Below, one piece after another: positions 12,780-48,878 of a DNA stretch of 64,000 nucleotides (its first letter is position 1; the number at the start of each line of letters is the position of its first letter). This DNA is from Guillardia theta CCMP2712. Taxonomy: Eukaryota; Protista; Cryptophyta. The stretch covers positions 113,238-177,237 of the forward strand of contig NW_005434559.1 of assembly GCF_000315625.1 (NCBI RefSeq), written 5' to 3'. The translations under genes were made by a program, and so were the position numbers. The notes below the pieces were generated by a model that was not told where the DNA came from, searched no databases, and saw nothing but the letters and a program-made list of their open reading frames with translations.

Positions 12780-14150
12780 AGATTTTATGGAGGGCTCCCT
12801 TGAATGTGCGACTACCCAAGGTAAGCCATAGATTGTAAGGGGTGGGGTATGTGTAGAAGGGGTGATCAAGCAAGAAATTGAAGGTAAAAGAGGGGGTAGG
12901 GTGGTGGATCCTTTTCTGTAGTTTTGAGACTCGTGAGGGGCATGCTTGAATAGTAGGGGTACAAAAGAGGGGTAGGGGTACTGGTTCTAACAGATCTTGT
13001 GCCATAGAGGAGTTTTTTTTATACGCACGAGGGCAAATTGTATCCGAGAGTTTTGAAATAAAATTTTAAACTTTTCCTGTTTATTTGAAATTAAAGAAAT
13101 CAAATTCGTGGTGGATGAAGCGTGCCAATTGAATATAGTTGAACCACATCTGCGAAAACTTCAAATGTTTTAGAAAATGTTCATATTTTACCCTTTAATT
13201 TCGTGGGAGCACACGAAAGGCACGTGACGCCCCTTCCTGACTTCAGGGAGATTTAAATCTTCGAAAACAAGTGTTTTCAAAATTTACTTCACAGGCTTGC
13301 AAGTGCACTGACCCTACCCTCCCTGCCCCTCAAATCTCGTAACTGGCATGACCCCACCCCTGTCTTTATATCATATTTGGTACTGAAACATACCCCTATG
13401 AACAGCATCTACGAATGACCACCCCATGAAGGTGCAACGCCTGATGTTTAGTCACACGGGGTGCAAGCAAGGGCCACGTGGGGTATTGCAAGGAGGAAGG
13501 AGGGGTTGATATACCCGCGGTGTTGCGCTAATAACCACCGGTGCCTGGGCCTCTTTTTATGGATCCTGTGGATCACCTGAGGGTGGGTGGTCCTACCACA
13601 AGGTAAAACTCACTTTTTAAAATCTCGTGGGAAGACCCTCTGCTCTATTTCCGTCAACTTTTTCCCGACTCGGCCGCTAGTCTGACCGTTCGACGGTCCG
13701 TCTGACCGGCGTCGGACCGGAGGCGGCAGCCCGGCCCCCGGCTCACTGGCCGGGCCTGAGTCAGCCGCCCGCCGGCGGCCGGCCCGGCCCGCGGCACTCG
13801 GCGGCCGGCCCTGTTGACTCGAAAGCAACGCGGGGGTCACCGTGGCACGGCGGCACCCGCCGCCGGGCCCCCGGGCCCGGGTGCGACTCCGGAGTCCGCG
13901 ACTTGAAGTTGAACTCAGCCACCGTCACGGGGGCCTCAGCGCAGGGGCGGAGTCCCACAGTGGCCAGCGGATTCGACGGACGGTCACGGGCCCGGGGCGC
14001 CGCGGGGCGGCCGGCCGCGCACTGGGGCAACTGAACTGCCACTATGCCGCGGCCGCGCCCCGCCGGTCCATATAGTATCACGGCGGGCGGGCCGGGCCGC
14101 TCGACGCCGAGGCGGGCCGGGAGCCGTTTGATCCCACAAAGCTGCCGGCA
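12780..14150. promoter_or_regulatory. Divergent intergenic island between eEF3 and the GT23 fusion gene
   Basis: GGGGT tract, AT block 13010-13290, ACCCC tract, very GC-rich arm 13660-14150. Confidence 0.5.
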
Positions 14151-22162: not shown

Positions 22163-22239
22163 GGTTTGTGGCTGGCAGCGGTCTGCCGGGGGAAGAGGGG
22201 ATCACAAGCTAAGAATTGTGGCTGAACACAACCCGGTGG

Positions 22240-23700
22240 TGCCGCCGCGGTAGCACCACCGGGCACCGGGCCCGGGCCCGGGCCCGGCAACCACCTGAGG
22301 CGAGCTTGTCGAAAGTGTCCTGGTTTACACCGCCAGATCCTTTTGGAGGGTCAGGGTGGGTTCTCTCGCCCCGGGGGTAGGGGATGAGGGTACTTCTCAC
22401 CCCCTATGTGCACTCTGTTGCTGTGGCATATGATGGGGTAGGTAGGTCATACCACCCTTAGCACTACGTGAAATCCTTTGGTTTCGGTGCTCCCTGCAGG
22501 TCAGGCGATCCCTGCACGGCTTCCGTTTTAAAATTGAGGTGTTTTAGAGCTTCAGTAAAAACATTAGTAAGATTCATTAACAATAGAGAATAAGTTCACT
22601 CTACTATGAATCAGCACCGTCACTGTTGGTACCCAAGCTCAATACAAACTTATAATAATATTGTGGTGTAGTAAACATCCAGGCCGGCCGTGCTGGTTGA
22701 GGTCCCTACGGGGACAAACGCCGGGGGGCCTCAGTGAGTATGCGGACGACCACAAGATTTATAACATTGTTGGTGTTACAAACTCAGATACAAATCATAA
22801 AAATCGTCATTGGTCACTTTTGTATGGGAAATCAACACCAAACTTGTACCGCAATCTCGAGATGTATGAAGTTGGCCTACGTACAAATTCCTACCCGCCA
22901 AACAGCAGGGGATCTGTCAGGTTTTGGAGGAACTGGAGGGTCGATCATGGCCACTTGGGGGGTGGGGGTGGTGTAAAGAGTGTGGCAGGGTAGGGGTTAG
23001 GGTTGTTGTTCTGAAAACAAGGTGGGTGGGTGGACACAAGGAAAGGACAGGGGTGATGCATTAGTTAGGCAAAATGGATATTAAGGTGGGTGGTACCAGG
23101 GACTGATGCTGGTGTATGGGGGGTCGATAGGGTAGGGTACACCATGAGGATTGCTGACAATGTTCGTATTTATGGTGCAAACGTAGGGTGGTGAAGGGAC
23201 CTGGTAGGTCGCAGATTGAATTAGAAGGGGTGGGGTATAAAATTGACGGGTGCGGGAAGCAGTGTGGGGGTAGGGCTGTTACAAAGTCCTTCTATACCCA
23301 CCACATATCTTCTGGATACCCTGTCTGTATGCTCTATCTTGTGACATGTGGGGTACAGAGGGGGGTGATGAAACAAGCTAGGGGGTAGGGGGTGATCGGT
23401 CAAGGCCAGGAGTTGCAATTTTGTAGCTTGCAGGGGTGGACCTGGTCGGACCCGAGCTGTAGAAGATAGACGGTGGTGCGTAGAGGGAGTTGGTACCGTG
23501 GGGTACTCACCTTTGGCAGAATCCAGGGGTCATTGATAGTTGCAGATGAGGGGTAGGTACATATTGAGAATGTGCAAGGGTAGGGTAGACTTTTTGTGCT
23601 GAGGAGGGTAGGGTAGTATCAATTGGGACATGGTGGGGTGCCTGGTGTTTGGATGTGAGAGTAGAGAAGGGGTAGAGGTATAAGAAAGATGCAATGGCAA
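22240..23700. promoter_or_regulatory. Divergent intergenic island
   Basis: GC-rich CCCGGG repeats at 22240-22290, AT block, long GGGGT-rich tract; between the F-box gene (-) and the aminotransferase (+). Confidence 0.45.
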
Positions 23701-27979: not shown

Positions 27980-28040
27980 GTCGGGCGGGCCCCGCAAGTT
28001 CGGGCCCCACCGTCGGGCGGGCCCCGCAAGTTCGGGCCCC
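27980..28040. repeat. Tandem duplication of cgtcgggcgggccccgcaagttcgggcccc in a GC-rich island
   Basis: Two 30-nt copies read directly. Confidence 0.85.
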
Positions 28041-28252
28041 GGCAAGAGGCCGGGGCCGGGCCCGGCCGCAACAGCGTCCTGCGCCGCCGGGCCGGCTACC
28101 GCACTTCGCGGCAGTCATGGCGCGGCCGGATCCGATCACGGCGCCGGGACCTTACGTGATACAAAAGTTTCGACGCCGCTAAGCCTCGGCCCGGAGTCAC
28201 GAACTGAGAGCCTCAGCAGAGTCACAGGCTGTAGGTCAGAGATGTTCAAGTA

Positions 28253-43970: not shown

Positions 43971-44652
43971 CTCCTGCTCTGGATCGTTCTATCGGCGCCC
44001 TCTATGCACAAGTAGCCCCTATCCTCCGTTCCTTCCATCCGCCTCCTCCGCTGACTCTTGCCCTTCCTTCTCCCTGTCTCTCCCCCTGCCTCCCTCTTCC
44101 TGCCTCGTCCTCCTACTCCTTCTCGTCCACCTGATCCCTCCCATCTCTCACCCTTGTCTCTCCCTTCTCTGAATGTGTGTCAACTCCTCTCCTCGGAACT
44201 CCCTTCTCTCCCTCCCTCCTCTCTCTCTCCCCCTCCTCCCCCAGCTCTCCCTCTACATCGATACCTCAATGCCTCTTCAGATCTCCCTTTCTCGTGTAAT
44301 TCCTCGTCCTCCTCCCCACCCGCCCGGCTCCGCCTATCGCTCCTCCTATCTTGTTTTCTCGCTTCCAATATCTTCCTCTCAGCACGAGTTGTATTCCAAG
44401 TGATGCCCGTGTCTTGCATTGCATATGGATCTCAGCCATCATCGTGATGAACGCTCTCCCATTTCGACGCTGGTGGTCAGGAGAATGAAGCTGATTGGTT
44501 TCTTCACAGTTGAACCATTAACATTCTCAAGTTCGGGAGAGGGCTCGTAAACAGGAGGCGCTGTCATACTGTGATCATCCGGTTTTTTTCGGGGTGAGCC
44601 CTTTCCTGCTACTGCACGTGCGGCTCCTCACTCACGTCACGCCAGCAAGGCG

Positions 44653-46534
44653 ATGCAGTACGACTACGACTTGCTCGTCATCGGTGGAGGATCGGGTAGG
44701 GGAACCGGCCGGTCATGTTAAGAACGACTCACCTCCTGTGGCAGGAGGTCTAGCCGCTTCCAAAGAAGCTGCTGCTCTCGGTGCCAAGGTCGCGGTTTGC
44801 GATTATGTCACACCGAGTCCCAAGGGTACAGATCTAGCTGCTCCCCTCTTGTTGCCTTGGCCTTCGTGACTTCGCCCTCCCCCTTTCGCCGTCCCCTGTG
44901 AAGTTTCGCTGTGGTTGACTCATGTGCAGGAACAACTTGGGGGCTTGGAGGAACATGCGTGAATGTAGGATGCATTCCGAAGAAGTTGATGCATCAGGCT
45001 TGCCTACTGGGTCTAGCGGTTGAAGACGCGAAATCGTTCGGTTGGAAGCTGCCGGACGAGAAGACTCACGACTGGGAGACGATGGTGAACAATGTGCAAG
45101 ACTACATCAGCGGCCTGAACTTCCGCTACCGAACGGAGTTGCGCACGAAGAAAGTTGACTACCTGAATGCCTTGGCGGTTTTTGTCGACGAGCACACCGT
45201 TGAGCTGACAGACAGGAAGGGAAACGTCTCGAGGAAAACAGCTGAAAACTTCATTGTGGCTACAGGCGGAAGGCCCAAGTACCTTGGCATCCCAAATGAG
45301 ATGGAGCTCTGCATAACATCCGACGACCTGTTCTCCCTGTCTTCGCCACCAGGGAAGACTCTGGTTGTGGGAGCTTCCTATGTTGCCTTGGAATGTGCCG
45401 GTTTCTTGAGAGGCCTCAACTACGACACCACCGTAATGATGCGCTCGATTCCTCTTCGTGGGTTCGATCAGCAGTGTGCCGAGATGATCTGCTCCTACAT
45501 GGAGGAGGAAGGGACCAAGTTCATCCGTGGGTGCATTCCAGCCAAGATAGAAAAAGCCGAATCTGGGAAGATCAAGGTTTTCTGGAAGCCAACCAACGGC
45601 GGTGATACCATGGAATCTGACGAGTACGACACCGTCATGCTTGCGATCGGGAGGTATGCGCTCACCGAGCAGTGCGGAGTGCAGAACGCAGGAATCAAGA
45701 CGGACCCGTCATCCAAGAAGATCATCGGGACAGGCACGGGCGTCGGTTTGACCGAGCAGAGCAACGTTGACCATATCTATGCTATCGGCGACGTTCTTCA
45801 TGGATACCCTGAGCTCACACCCGTGGCAATCCAAGCTGGTATCCTTCTTGCACGCAGAATTTTCGGAGCGAGCAGCAAGGCGATGGACTACGAGAAGGTT
45901 CCGACAGCCGTCTTCACCCCTGTCGAGTACGGATGCGTCGGTCTGAGCGAGGAGGACGCGATCGCCCGACATGGTGAGGAGAACATCGAAGTTTATCATC
46001 AGAGCTTCAAGGTCAAATCTCAATGTCTCGCTCCCCTGCCCTGAGATTCTCTCGCAGCCGCTTGAGCTGACTGTCCCGGGACGAGGAGACAACGCAGGAT
46101 ACCTCAAGGTCACTGCTCCTTTCCCTCTCAATGGGGAGCTGCTGATGCGCCTGTGTTGGTCAGGTGATTGTGGATAAGAAGGACAACGAGAGGGTCCTGG
46201 GGATGCACTACCTCGGGTGGGGTGCAGGAGAGATCATGCAAGGATTCGCCATCGCTCTGAAGCTAAGAGCCACCAAGGTGACGCTGTTGCCCAGCACTTG
46301 CCCCAGCTGAGTCGGACATGCAGGAGGACCTGGATGAACTCGTTGGCATCCATCCGACAAGGTCAGTCAGCACTCGTGGGCTGGGCCGAGCCTAGCTGAC
46401 TCTCTGGCAGTGCGGAGCTGTTCACGACACTCAAAGTGACTAAGAGCTCCGGTCTTGACTTTCGTCAGGTTCAGTTTGTGACAGTCGCGATGGTTTCGCC
46501 TTGACCCCTGACGCAGGCCGGTTGCTGAGGTTAA
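44653..46534 (+). CDS. TXNRD: High-Mr (animal-type) thioredoxin reductase, selenoprotein with C-terminal Gly-Cys-Sec-Gly
   Basis: YDYDLLVIGGGSG|GLA, GGTCVNVGCIPKK, GASYVALECAG, ELTPVAIQAG, GIHPT; the last intron (46469-46516) joins TKSSGLDFRQ to GCC GGT TGC TGA GGT TAA (A-G-C-U-G-stop; UGA at 46526-28). Confidence 0.95.
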
Positions 46535-46535
46535 G

Positions 46536-46611
46536 CTGCTGCCAGACTCGATCTCTTAGGAGACGCTGCTGGAGATAAGCAAGGCGTCTCCTGGGAGAGG
46601 TTTGGCAGCAG
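46536..46611 (+). promoter_or_regulatory. Long RNA hairpin 7 nt downstream of the Sec UGA (SRE-like)
   Basis: 13 bp + 15 bp + 4 bp stems, 7-nt loop, four G-U pairs on the + strand. Confidence 0.7.
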
Positions 46612-46708
46612 GACGAGGAGGCAGAGGCCCACCTGCTGTGCGCGATTCTTGTCGCATTCCGGCGGGTTTGATCACCTCCCCGAAGCCCAAGGGTTTGCAT
46701 GCAGAGCA

Positions 46709-46767
46709 GCATGCAGCTATGAAGGACAAGCTTCAAACGCTACGCGCAAGCTTGACCCGAGACATGC
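46709..46767 (+). promoter_or_regulatory. Type II SECIS element
   Basis: gcatg..ATGA(46719) + 12 nt + AAA(46735) + mini-stem cgc-tac-gcg + helix ggacaagctt/aagcttgacc + GA(46759) ..catgc. Confidence 0.9.
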
Positions 46768-46824
46768 CCATCACTTTGACTACGTTTTTATAATGTAACG
46801 GTTCATTGCCCACACCCCCAGCCC

Positions 46825-48878
46825 CTAGAAGATGAACTTGTCTCCGTTAGCACCCTCCCATTCTTCACTGTCGTCGTACGCTCGGGCCGTGAAACCGGTC
46901 TGCCTCTCGAGATAGCTTGAGAGGAGCGACGGTCGCGATGAGGCGGGTGGTGGGCCATGCCCGTTCACCCCCGCACCGTTGACCCTCAAACCATTCATGC
47001 CGTACCCGCCGGTCCCGCTGCCAATCAAGCCAACGCGTTGCGTGCCCACGTCATTGTCGCCAAGTCCTTTCAACCGCTTGAGCTCACTCAACGCTGCGTC
47101 TCTTTCTGCCGTCACACGCTTGAGCTTGTCCACCAGTGAGAGCTTTTCATCGTCGTCCCCGTACCACTCAGGGTTTCCCTGTATCAGCGCAAGCTTCATT
47201 GCTAAACTGACCGGTGACTCTCCGTCGCGCGACCATTTTTGCGCCTCTGCGAGTTTACGGGCAGAGTAGAGTTCAAACTCCTCTTGGAAGATTTCCACGA
47301 ATTGTTCTCTCGTGATTCTCCTGTCCTGTCCGAGCTCCACATTCCGAGTGATGTACTGGAAGTCATCGAAGCCCAACAAGATCATCGGGTCTGTGTGAAA
47401 TGCTTTGAGGCCAGTCTGCAGCTCTGAGAAGGACAAGGAGTTCGAGCCAAGGAGGTCAAGCCTGTCAAATACTGAGTCAACCATCTGCTCAAAGTGATCT
47501 GCATTGTCAAAGACAATCAGCTTGCTGAGAATTGGATCGAGCACACGGATAGATTTGTCTATTCCCTGCCGATTGTTTTCAGCTTGCTTCTTTCTTATAC
47601 CCTGCTCTTCCTCGTTCACGCATCGAATGAAGTTGTCGAGCATCACGGCAACGACTACGTTGAGCAGAATCATGGAAGAGATGATCATGTAAACCACAAA
47701 GAATATCATTACAGTCTTGTCAGATGAAGAAAAGAGAGGCCTGGCAACTGAAGATGCCCACGCATCTCCAGTAGCACACTGGTACATGGTAAAGATGGCG
47801 AGTTCAAAATTCCCAAAAAGATCAGGTCTCCTTGTACCGTAGAGATCCACTGAGATGATCGCGAACATGGAGGTGACGATGACAAGAATCAACACTGAGT
47901 TGAGAACTGGCAGCAAACTGCCAAGAATCGCATTGAAGATGACGCGAAGATGTCTCATCCTTTTGAAAAGCTGAGCTGCCCTGAAAACTCTCAGCATTCG
48001 CAGGGTGGTGAAGGCAGGCACTTTAGGTAGTGCCAGAGACAGCAGAGAAACGATCACGATTACAGTGTCAAAAATGTTCCACCCATTGAGCCAAAATTTC
48101 ATCCCATACTTCCCTTTCCAATTGACAAAAATGTTGAGTGCAAGCTGATAACAAAGTCAGCGAGGGGAGCCAGGAGAAAGAGCAACGAATCACGGGCACG
48201 TACCTCGAAGGTGAAGATAGCTGTGAAGATGATGTCGGTCACATTGAAGACTGTGCTTGCTACTGAGTCGCTGGAAGGAGTCAACTCTGCCTGAACGCAG
48301 TTGAGGAAGAAGATCGCCCCAATAGAGAAGCCAAAGAGCAGCTGGAAGGCTTCCGACTGGTACATCCTTCTCATGAAGAGCCGAAACTTGGTGAAGCTCG
48401 AGAAGAGCGTGTCGTGCAATTTCATCTCATTCATCTGGTTCGACACCTTTTGATAGCACTCGAGCAGCTGTGCTTCCGTATGAAACCGAAGAGGAAAGCT
48501 CCTCCCCTGGTTCAACCCCTCATTGTCGGTGAATATGATCAGGGCAGGGAAGTTGGAGAAGTTTCCTTTCTCAGCATCCGCCTGCCTTCTCTTCAGCAGA
48601 GCAATCGAAGAAGTCGAGTGGCTCTTTAAATCCTCCATCTGCGTGATTTCTTGCAGAGAAATTTTGGTCACATTTCCGTCAGGTTCATCGTCGTCTACAA
48701 AGGCAAGGTACGAGCGAGTCAGCACTAAACTCTTGGTTTCCCATGGATCTTTTGTGACATCATGCGAAAGGAACAAAACTTTGCTATGGTACAGGACAGG
48801 CTCACCAAACCTGTCAGCCAGAGACTGAGACCCACTCCGTGTCCGCTCTTGAGAGCGATTCTGAACCTCAAAGCTCAT
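46825..48878 (-). CDS. Single-domain voltage-gated cation channel (BacNav/EukCat-like) with N-terminal PH-like domain and C-terminal EF-hand-like motifs
   Basis: One intron 48145-48203; IFTFE|LALN..NGWNIFD, S4 LRMLRVFRAAQLFKR, pore LFGNF..TMYQCATGDAWAS, S6 LLNVVVAVMLDNF, FDRLDLLGSNSLSFSEL. Confidence 0.88.

Follow-up and report, generated by a model that had tools for sequence, protein, structure and literature searches.

The window analyzed here is a 64,000-nt stretch of Guillardia theta CCMP2712 DNA (contig NW_005434559.1, positions 113,238-177,237, forward strand), and all coordinates count from its first letter. On its + strand it carries a large thioredoxin reductase (TrxR) gene that encodes selenocysteine (Sec) with a UGA as its penultimate codon. 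The 3′ untranslated region (3′UTR) of the gene contains several potential hairpins followed by a Sec insertion sequence (SECIS). A preliminary description, made from the DNA alone, had grouped three hairpins into one candidate, undescribed recoding cassette, acting either by pausing ribosomes at the UGA or by switching SECIS availability. We show that the first hairpin (hairpin 1), located just past the stop codon, is real and expressed, and that selection has conserved an RNA helix at its base.

The TrxR gene and the hairpin behind its stop codon

The features of the gene and of hairpin 1 are as follows.

44594-46534, + strand: place of the public protein model of the large TrxR gene, a gene with Pyr_redox_2 and Pyr_redox_dim domains (Pfam)
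46517-46534, + strand: 18-nt terminal coding exon, GCC GGT TGC TGA GGT TAA (Ala-Gly-Cys-Sec-Gly-stop)
46526-46528, + strand: Sec codon UGA, penultimate residue of TrxR
46532-46534, + strand: true stop codon UAA
46536-46611, + strand: hairpin 1, built of a 13-bp outer stem and a 15-bp inner stem, separated by a 3-nt bulge, and topped by a small apical stem
46536-46548, + strand: 5′ arm of the basal helix (CUGCUGCCAGACU), seen in the fold, in the anchored pair tables of 16 TrxR mRNAs and by RNAalifold
46549-46598, + strand: species-specific insert closed by the basal helix (3-nt bulge, stem 46552-46566/46584-46598, apical part 46567-46583)
46599-46611, + strand: 3′ arm of the basal helix (GGUUUGGCAGCAG), with the core GCAGC at 46605-46609
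∼46814, + strand: TrxR poly(A) site (14 reads with a non-templated A-tail after 46814)

The top protein match of the large TrxR exon is GUITHDRAFT_90077 of G. theta CCMP2712 (99% identity). This public model (P0001, 492 aa) ends ...RQAGC and lacks Sec-Gly, indicating that it was cut at the Sec UGA. For G. theta 14 selenoproteins are listed (Jiang et al., 2020; PMC7539508); a search of this species for selenoprotein K (Pfam PF10961) returned only sub-threshold, low-complexity matches.

Transcript evidence was taken from two RNA contigs (X1 and X3) and a stranded, 3′-biased RNA-seq run (X23). Four TrxR introns, the last one included, were supported by both contigs and by reads of the run. The last splice joint (46465/46514, GT..AG, cut +3) was present in the two contigs and in four reads, and it yields the 18-nt exon. 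Read depth on the + strand was 58–133 over 46528-46791 and zero beyond 46835. The TrxR 3′UTR thus spans 46535-46814 (∼280 nt).

The stem of hairpin 1 begins 7 nt past the UGA and 1 nt past the UAA. Its minimum free energy (MFE) is −53.2 kcal/mol (z −8.38), and none of 200 dinucleotide shuffles was as stable. The opposite strand folds 12 kcal/mol more weakly (−40.8), as expected if the G·U pairs are usable on the TrxR mRNA strand only. The preliminary description had proposed this geometry, the recoding-type distance from the penultimate UGA, the position past the true stop and the strand-specific use of the G·U pairs, and the fold and the sequence bear it out on all these points. When the region 46530-46700 was searched against the 87-Mb, 669-contig assembly, only its own locus was recovered at E ≤ 10. 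Hairpin 1 is therefore single-copy and does not belong to a dispersed foldback repeat or miniature inverted-repeat transposable element (MITE), an origin that had been raised as a possible refutation. A sliding 80-nt MFE scan placed hairpin 1 among the few most stable loci of the window. The lowest folding energies in the window, on both strands, belong to GC-rich simple repeats (GGGCCC/GCCGGG-type; ∼13700-14070, 22210-22310 and 27980-28130). Since such repeats also fold stably, raw MFE alone is not decisive, and the case relies on the z-score and on the comparison among species.

In the 3′-biased run, groups of 11–14 reads start just 3′ of hairpin 1 (46608, 46620 and 46651), preceded by ∼9 non-matching, low-agreement letters. 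Depth over hairpin 1 (58–71) is about half that of the remaining UTR (99–133). Both features could reflect reverse-transcriptase stops at a stable stem, or simply the 3′ bias.

A basal helix conserved among Sec-type TrxR mRNAs

A protein search returned 13 proteins with 71–78% amino acid identity to the G. theta TrxR, and the matching transcript contigs were compared. Further TrxR loci were collected by scanning metagenome contigs for the pattern GCN GGN TGC TGA GGY TAR. All orthologues end GC-UGA-GGY-UAA/UAG. Among the relatives, L006 is Chroomonas sp. CCMP1168, L008 clusters (at least 90%) with Teleaulax amphioxeia, and L009 with Hemiselmis tepida. A pattern search of the G. theta assembly revealed two further TrxR genes ending GC-UGA-G-stop (∼45–60% identical in protein), giving three Sec-type TrxR paralogues. 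Positions are counted from the U of UGA as +1. Sixteen mRNAs bear the helix: 11 cryptophyte orthologues, all three G. theta paralogues, a glaucophyte, Acanthamoeba and one unplaced lineage.

The conserved part of hairpin 1 is confined to a basal ∼11-bp helix with the core GCUGC/GCAGC. In G. theta the 5′ core occupies 46538-46542 and is overlapped by a further copy at 46535-46539; in mRNA terms the core is at +13 and the overlapping copy at +10. The first G of the core falls at +13 or +14 in 15 of the 16 mRNAs and at +17 in L039. All cryptophyte UTRs long enough to be judged have GCUGC at +14 (GCUAC in L009, GCUGU in L003), that is, 5 nt after the UAA. The 5′ arm begins 7–10 nt past the UGA. 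The spacer measures 7 nt in G. theta; in the majority of relatives it is ∼9 nt, the earliest pair shared by many of them being the one at +13. The stem is 11–13 bp long.

The partner, GCAGC or GUAGC, lies downstream at a very variable distance. The 3′ arms end between +59 and +428 overall, and the 3′ core ends in the cryptophytes are listed below.

G. theta: +84
L012 and L101: +95
L011: +111
L003: +155
L009: +183
L002: +219
L008: +283
L100: +315
L007: +335
L124: +428

The insert enclosed by the helix, tens to ∼400 nt long, cannot be aligned between species, and the 15-bp inner stem of G. theta is species-specific. The SECIS is always downstream of the basal helix and outside it.

Pairing of the post-stop 28-mer with the rest of the UTR (RNAduplex) beat dinucleotide shuffles in 10 of 11 species, with 0–21 of 300 or 2 of 200 shuffles reaching the observed energy; in L100 it was not significant (74 of 200). 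Counting complementarity to a fixed 12-mer (G·U allowed) often gave individual p values above 0.2 and a Fisher-combined p of 4e-5; this count has low power, and the energy-based shuffles and an arm-swap control are preferred. When sequences were anchored on the core, columns −1 to +9 were paired in 12–16 of the 16 sequences, and columns outside the helix only at chance level. The flanking columns show four to five pair types each. Within the core, G-C is replaced by A-U (L009), G·U (L012, L101) and U·G (L003). The variable columns were paired in 73.6% of cases, compared with 45.1 ± 4.6% when 3′ arms were swapped among species (0 of 5000 swaps reached the observed value), counts that are somewhat inflated because the 3′ arms were chosen partly by complementarity. 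Sliding the partner by 1–3 nt left 40–54% of the variable columns paired. The arm-swap control was also run on the cryptophytes alone. For the nine short-insert sequences RNAalifold predicted the basal helix as the only structure, with compensatory changes in 6 of its 10 pairs, although MAFFT had misplaced four of the 3′ arms.

The other two G. theta paralogues carry the helix as well: the core starts at +14, the flanking pairs differ, and a SECIS-like AUGA...GA hairpin follows.

C33 (L141:1507-1620, ∼94372, + strand, 48% identical): UAA AGUC GCUGCUAUCG ... CGAUAGCAGC
C9 (L137:1445-1509, ∼798116, − strand): UAA AGAA GCUGCCACCC ... GGGUGGCAGC

In the glaucophyte Gloeochaete wittrockiana the sequence reads UAA GCCU GCUGCCGGCA ... 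UGCCAGGCAGCAGGC, with the core at +14. Acanthamoeba castellanii and G. theta have the same 18 nt from the UGA onward (UGAGGUUAAGCUGCUGCC), with the core at +13; in Acanthamoeba they pair with GCAGCAGG ∼120 nt downstream. The unplaced metagenomic lineage L039 forms a −50 kcal/mol duplex with the same core.

These data show that (i) the base of hairpin 1 is maintained with compensatory changes in orthologues and paralogues, in agreement with the RNA-level selection that the preliminary description had read from the G·U pairs; and (ii) covariation, which it had named as a check, is found in the basal helix. As a unit, the three-hairpin cassette is not supported, with only the basal ∼11 bp of hairpin 1 conserved.

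The conserved 5′ arm (GCUGCUG) directly repeats the Gly-Cys-Sec codon context (G GCU GCU GA; GUUGCUGA in G. theta) found 15–19 nt upstream (46521-46542; equivalent site in Acanthamoeba, L146:3893-3916). The 3′ arm could alternatively pair with the Cys-Sec codons themselves. The third position of the Gly codon varies (GGC, GGU, GGA), hence this alternative pairing is not clearly selected.

Downstream hairpins, the SECIS and the convergent gene

Behind hairpin 1 the following features were found.

46617-46679, + strand: hairpin 2, present in the MFE fold (z −1.95; 10 of 200 shuffles as good)
46696-46715, + strand: small perfect 7-bp hairpin UGCAUGC/GCAUGCA, of which 46709-46715 also form part of the 5′ strand of SECIS helix I
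46710-46766, + strand: SECIS (AUGA 46719-46722, helix II 46724-46757, apical AAA 46735-46737, 3′ GA 46759-46760)
46825-48102, − strand: last exon of a convergent ion-channel gene (open reading frame, Pfam Ion_trans; stop at 46825-46827)

Hairpin 2 forms in the fold, as had been described. It has no recognizable counterpart in the orthologues, where the spacer between the helix and the SECIS varies in length and sequence. With a stability that is not significant and no alignable equivalent, it was rejected as a conserved element. The small hairpin likewise exists and overlaps helix I; the region that holds both it and the SECIS shows no exceptional stability (z −1.5). When the SECIS and its flanking sequence were folded for ten orthologues and paralogues, ordinary SECIS hairpins resulted, with helix I built from the immediate flanks and no recurrent competitor hairpin. 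The proposed SECIS-availability switch is therefore without comparative support.

The non-Watson-Crick SECIS quartet on either side of helix II is present (AUGA 46719-46722 and (C)GA(G) 46758-46761). Against Rfam SECIS_1 the element reaches 24.4 bits (E 0.19), which falls short of the gathering score of 35, and the orthologous elements of L002 and L003 score 25.1 and 21.3 bits. The Rfam SECIS model is dominated by animal sequences. When the G. theta SECIS was aligned with nine orthologous ones, RNAalifold gave 10 consensus pairs, 6 of them with compensatory changes. AAA/AAC is kept in the apical loop, and the UGA..GA core in nine orthologues, the preceding base being variable (AUGA, GUGA, UUGA). 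The orthologous elements have the form [A/G/U]UGA(C/A)GG...AAA(C)...CC(N)GA(G) and lie downstream of the basal helix in all cases. Conservation and covariation in the orthologues thus uphold the original SECIS call despite its sub-threshold score. UUGA replaces the canonical AUGA in the Hemiselmis-like sequences L009 (2085-2156), L012 (1849-1920) and L101 (787-858, − strand) and in the unlabeled L003 (1898-1970), and GUGA occurs in L124 and L011; the rest of the element is conserved. The post-stop helix was also considered as the base of the SECIS in some species (L008, 'UGAUUGCAGC'). This candidate was rejected, as the true SECIS is further downstream in every species.

Reads of the minus strand cover 46792-47143, with mere traces further left (to ∼46748). 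The TrxR and Ion_trans mRNAs overlap tail to tail by tens of nt (46792-46835), so that the 3′ end of the ion-channel gene reaches the last tens of nt of the TrxR 3′UTR and does not reach hairpin 1. Strand-resolved coverage therefore assigns all the proposed hairpins to the TrxR mRNA, and essentially to it only. Unstranded transcript assemblies merge the two genes into single contigs of 4.6–5.0 kb.

Relation to known recoding signals and possible function

Stem-loops behind the stop codon have been noticed before. Six of eight human mRNAs with a C-terminal Sec, TR1 included, can form one right after the stop codon, with a function stated as unknown (Cockman et al., 2019; PMC6844570). In the SelS mRNA the proximal stem-loop (PSL) covers UTR nt 3–36 and its structure is conserved (PMC6844570). 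The G. theta stem resembles the PSLs in lying 1 nt past the UAA and 7 nt past the UGA of a penultimate Sec, and in a structure conserved among species, which in TrxR applies to the basal helix and not to the upper part. In contrast, human PSLs are short, with no reported shared core or fixed register, whereas the TrxR element is a long-range closing helix with a GCUGC/GCAGC core, a variable insert and covariation across protist supergroups and paralogues; for human TR1 the comparison is with the literature. In Euplotes crassus, the TR1 mRNA contains a long stable RNA structure immediately after the Sec UGA (Turanov et al., 2013; PMC3737529). Gene family, position and the idea of a ribosome delay that promotes Sec insertion are shared with G. 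theta, but the Euplotes structure concerns one species only and was compared by its published description. The G. theta hairpin is thus of a kind already noticed rather than a new device, and the word "undescribed" was too strong. In the literature consulted we found no description of a conserved GCUGC/GCAGC core, of a near-fixed register, of a helix closing a variable insert over a long range, or of covariation across paralogues and supergroups.

Two further classes of signal offer a comparison. The Sec redefinition element (SRE), present in SELENON and other selenoprotein mRNAs, is a stem-loop placed a few nt behind the UGA, and that of SELENON stimulates UGA recoding and readthrough, as summarized in a later paper (Howard et al., 2005, 2007, cited in PMC6844570). 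SREs lie in coding sequence and are therefore shaped jointly by the protein, whereas the G. theta element is wholly in the 3′UTR past the UAA (46532-46534), is much longer and has a conserved core. In alphaviruses and in tobra-, peclu- and furoviruses, readthrough of UGA is increased as much as 10-fold by extended 3′ stem-loops (Firth et al., 2011; PMC3159437). They combine a 7–9 nt spacer, a stem of 11–12 bp or longer, a ∼100-nt poorly conserved 'loop' and compensatory substitutions, and act at the ribosomal mRNA entrance (PMC3159437). The TrxR helix shares this anatomy: a spacer of 7 nt (∼9 nt in most relatives), a stem of 11–13 bp, arms split by a variable region, and compensatory changes. 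The viral signals differ in that a near-cognate tRNA inserts a standard amino acid in viral open reading frames, whereas in the cellular TrxR mRNA a SECIS-dependent Sec-tRNA would compete with termination, and the real stop follows two codons later.

Judged from the sequence comparisons, the basal helix is probably a second signal beside the SECIS in Sec-type TrxR mRNAs. Its register is fixed to the stop codons within ∼1 nt (except in L039) while the rest drifts, which points to an interaction with the ribosome at the end of the open reading frame. The match of spacer and anatomy to the stimulators of UGA readthrough, with a spacer that is also that of frameshift stimulators, favors a role in tipping the UGA from termination to Sec. 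Stimulators of frameshifting and of stop-codon readthrough occupy the mRNA entry channel, where the unwinding site meets them while the recoded codon is in the A site. By analogy, with the UGA in the A site the intact helix would be positioned at the mRNA entry channel and may disfavor or delay termination. Such a delay could give the complex of SECIS, SBP2, eEFSec and Sec-tRNA time to decode the penultimate codon, after which the helix would be unwound as the last two codons (Gly and stop) are read. Neither hairpin 2 nor the small pre-SECIS hairpin would be part of the device; both would be lineage-specific filler. That the helix stimulates Sec decoding in this way is a tentative proposal, to which we give somewhat less than an even chance.

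Several observations weigh against this proposal. The few published tests of analogous structures revealed no positive effect on Sec insertion (PMC3737529, PMC6844570). Deletion of the SelS PSL raised recoding, through a spacing effect, deletion of the TR1 PSL did not increase Sec insertion, and the TR1 and SelK deletions were without effect (PMC6844570). Deletion of the Euplotes TR1 structure left position-dependent Sec insertion unchanged in human cells (PMC3737529). The near-invariant core suggests a sequence-specific reader, protein or rRNA, that a pure roadblock does not need, and with a core at +14 the helix would suit the entry channel no less well when the ribosome stands on the Gly or UAA codon. 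In the haptophytes Scyphosphaera and Diacronema and in L036 a stem-loop starts at +9/+10 and lacks the core, and in the TGR-like TrxR L047 the post-stop pairing test found no significant helix; the inflation of the pairing counts, mentioned above, has to be added here. The negative tests of the analogues, the invariant core and the +14 register that also suits Gly or UAA are the reasons why we rate stimulation of Sec decoding no higher.

A rival reading is an architectural clamp, in which the helix loops out the variable UTR to hold the SECIS or its bound complex at a workable distance and orientation, or serves as a platform for a protein bridging SECIS and ribosome. Every time, the helix is located between the UGA and the SECIS and leaves the SECIS outside; inserts of up to ∼400 nt are tolerated when closed by it, and the invariant core is suited to a sequence-specific binding site. 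The SPUR model for SelS likewise proposes a proximal element that recruits the SECIS (PMC6844570). We nevertheless regard a clamp as unlikely: it does not need a register fixed within ∼1 nt of the stop codons, and the distance from UGA to SECIS becomes no more uniform when the insert is subtracted (159–588 nt raw, ∼73–279 nt without it, with similar relative spread). A role of the helix in normalizing this distance was rejected, since the distances give it no support.

We likewise give only a low probability to the helix serving another step, be it termination or recycling at the UAA, keeping post-termination or read-through ribosomes from stripping SBP2 from the SECIS, or mRNA stability, localization or 3′-end processing. 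A core 5 nt past the UAA must be opened by the ribosome on Gly or UAA, the UAA is itself paired in L008 and Acanthamoeba, and the published deletions of analogous stem-loops left Sec insertion unreduced (PMC6844570, PMC3737529). Set against this, the conservation goes with a GC-UGA-G-stop end of the TrxR mRNA, in lineages that are very far apart as well as in three paralogues, which points to a common special decoding problem, and the poly(A) site is ∼200 nt away.

Absence of function would make hairpin 1 a neutral palindrome, the remnant of a foldback or MITE, or the precursor of a small RNA. This is very improbable and, for the basal helix, largely refuted. In its favor, the species-specific inner 15-bp stem is almost perfect, as a recent inverted duplication would be, and hairpins of orthologous UTRs show weak, generic similarity to Rfam miRNA families. 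Against it, hairpin 1 is single-copy, its base is kept with compensatory changes across paralogues and supergroups, and RNA-seq coverage runs continuously across it as part of the mRNA. The Rfam miRNA and snoRNA matches in the window and the orthologues, all far below gathering scores and on low-complexity stems, were rejected, and no miRNA family match was found in the window region.

How Sec is chosen over termination two codons before the true stop is not well understood, and the choice is commonly attributed to the SECIS alone. The helix combines a fixed register with a near-invariant core and with compensatory changes over three paralogues and several supergroups, the type of evidence that indicates selection. 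A wider reading is that the GCUGC/GCAGC helix ∼10 nt past the Sec codon, which closes a freely evolving insert, is an ancient second cis-element, older than the divergence of Amoebozoa, Archaeplastida and Cryptista, and needed alongside the SECIS for decoding of a UGA two codons ahead of the real stop; we consider this possible, though doubtful. Stem-loops noticed just past such stops in a few mRNAs were set aside as 'function unknown', since deleting them singly had no effect; if the wider reading were true, the proximal stem-loops of C-terminal-Sec mRNAs, dismissed after negative deletions in human cells, would be a genuine recoding signal. The helix offers precise and cheap mutants for functional tests, namely disruption and repair of the arms and shifts of the register. 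The signature UGA-GGN-UAR-N4-GCUGC helps to annotate Sec-type TrxR genes, which gene callers truncate at the UGA.

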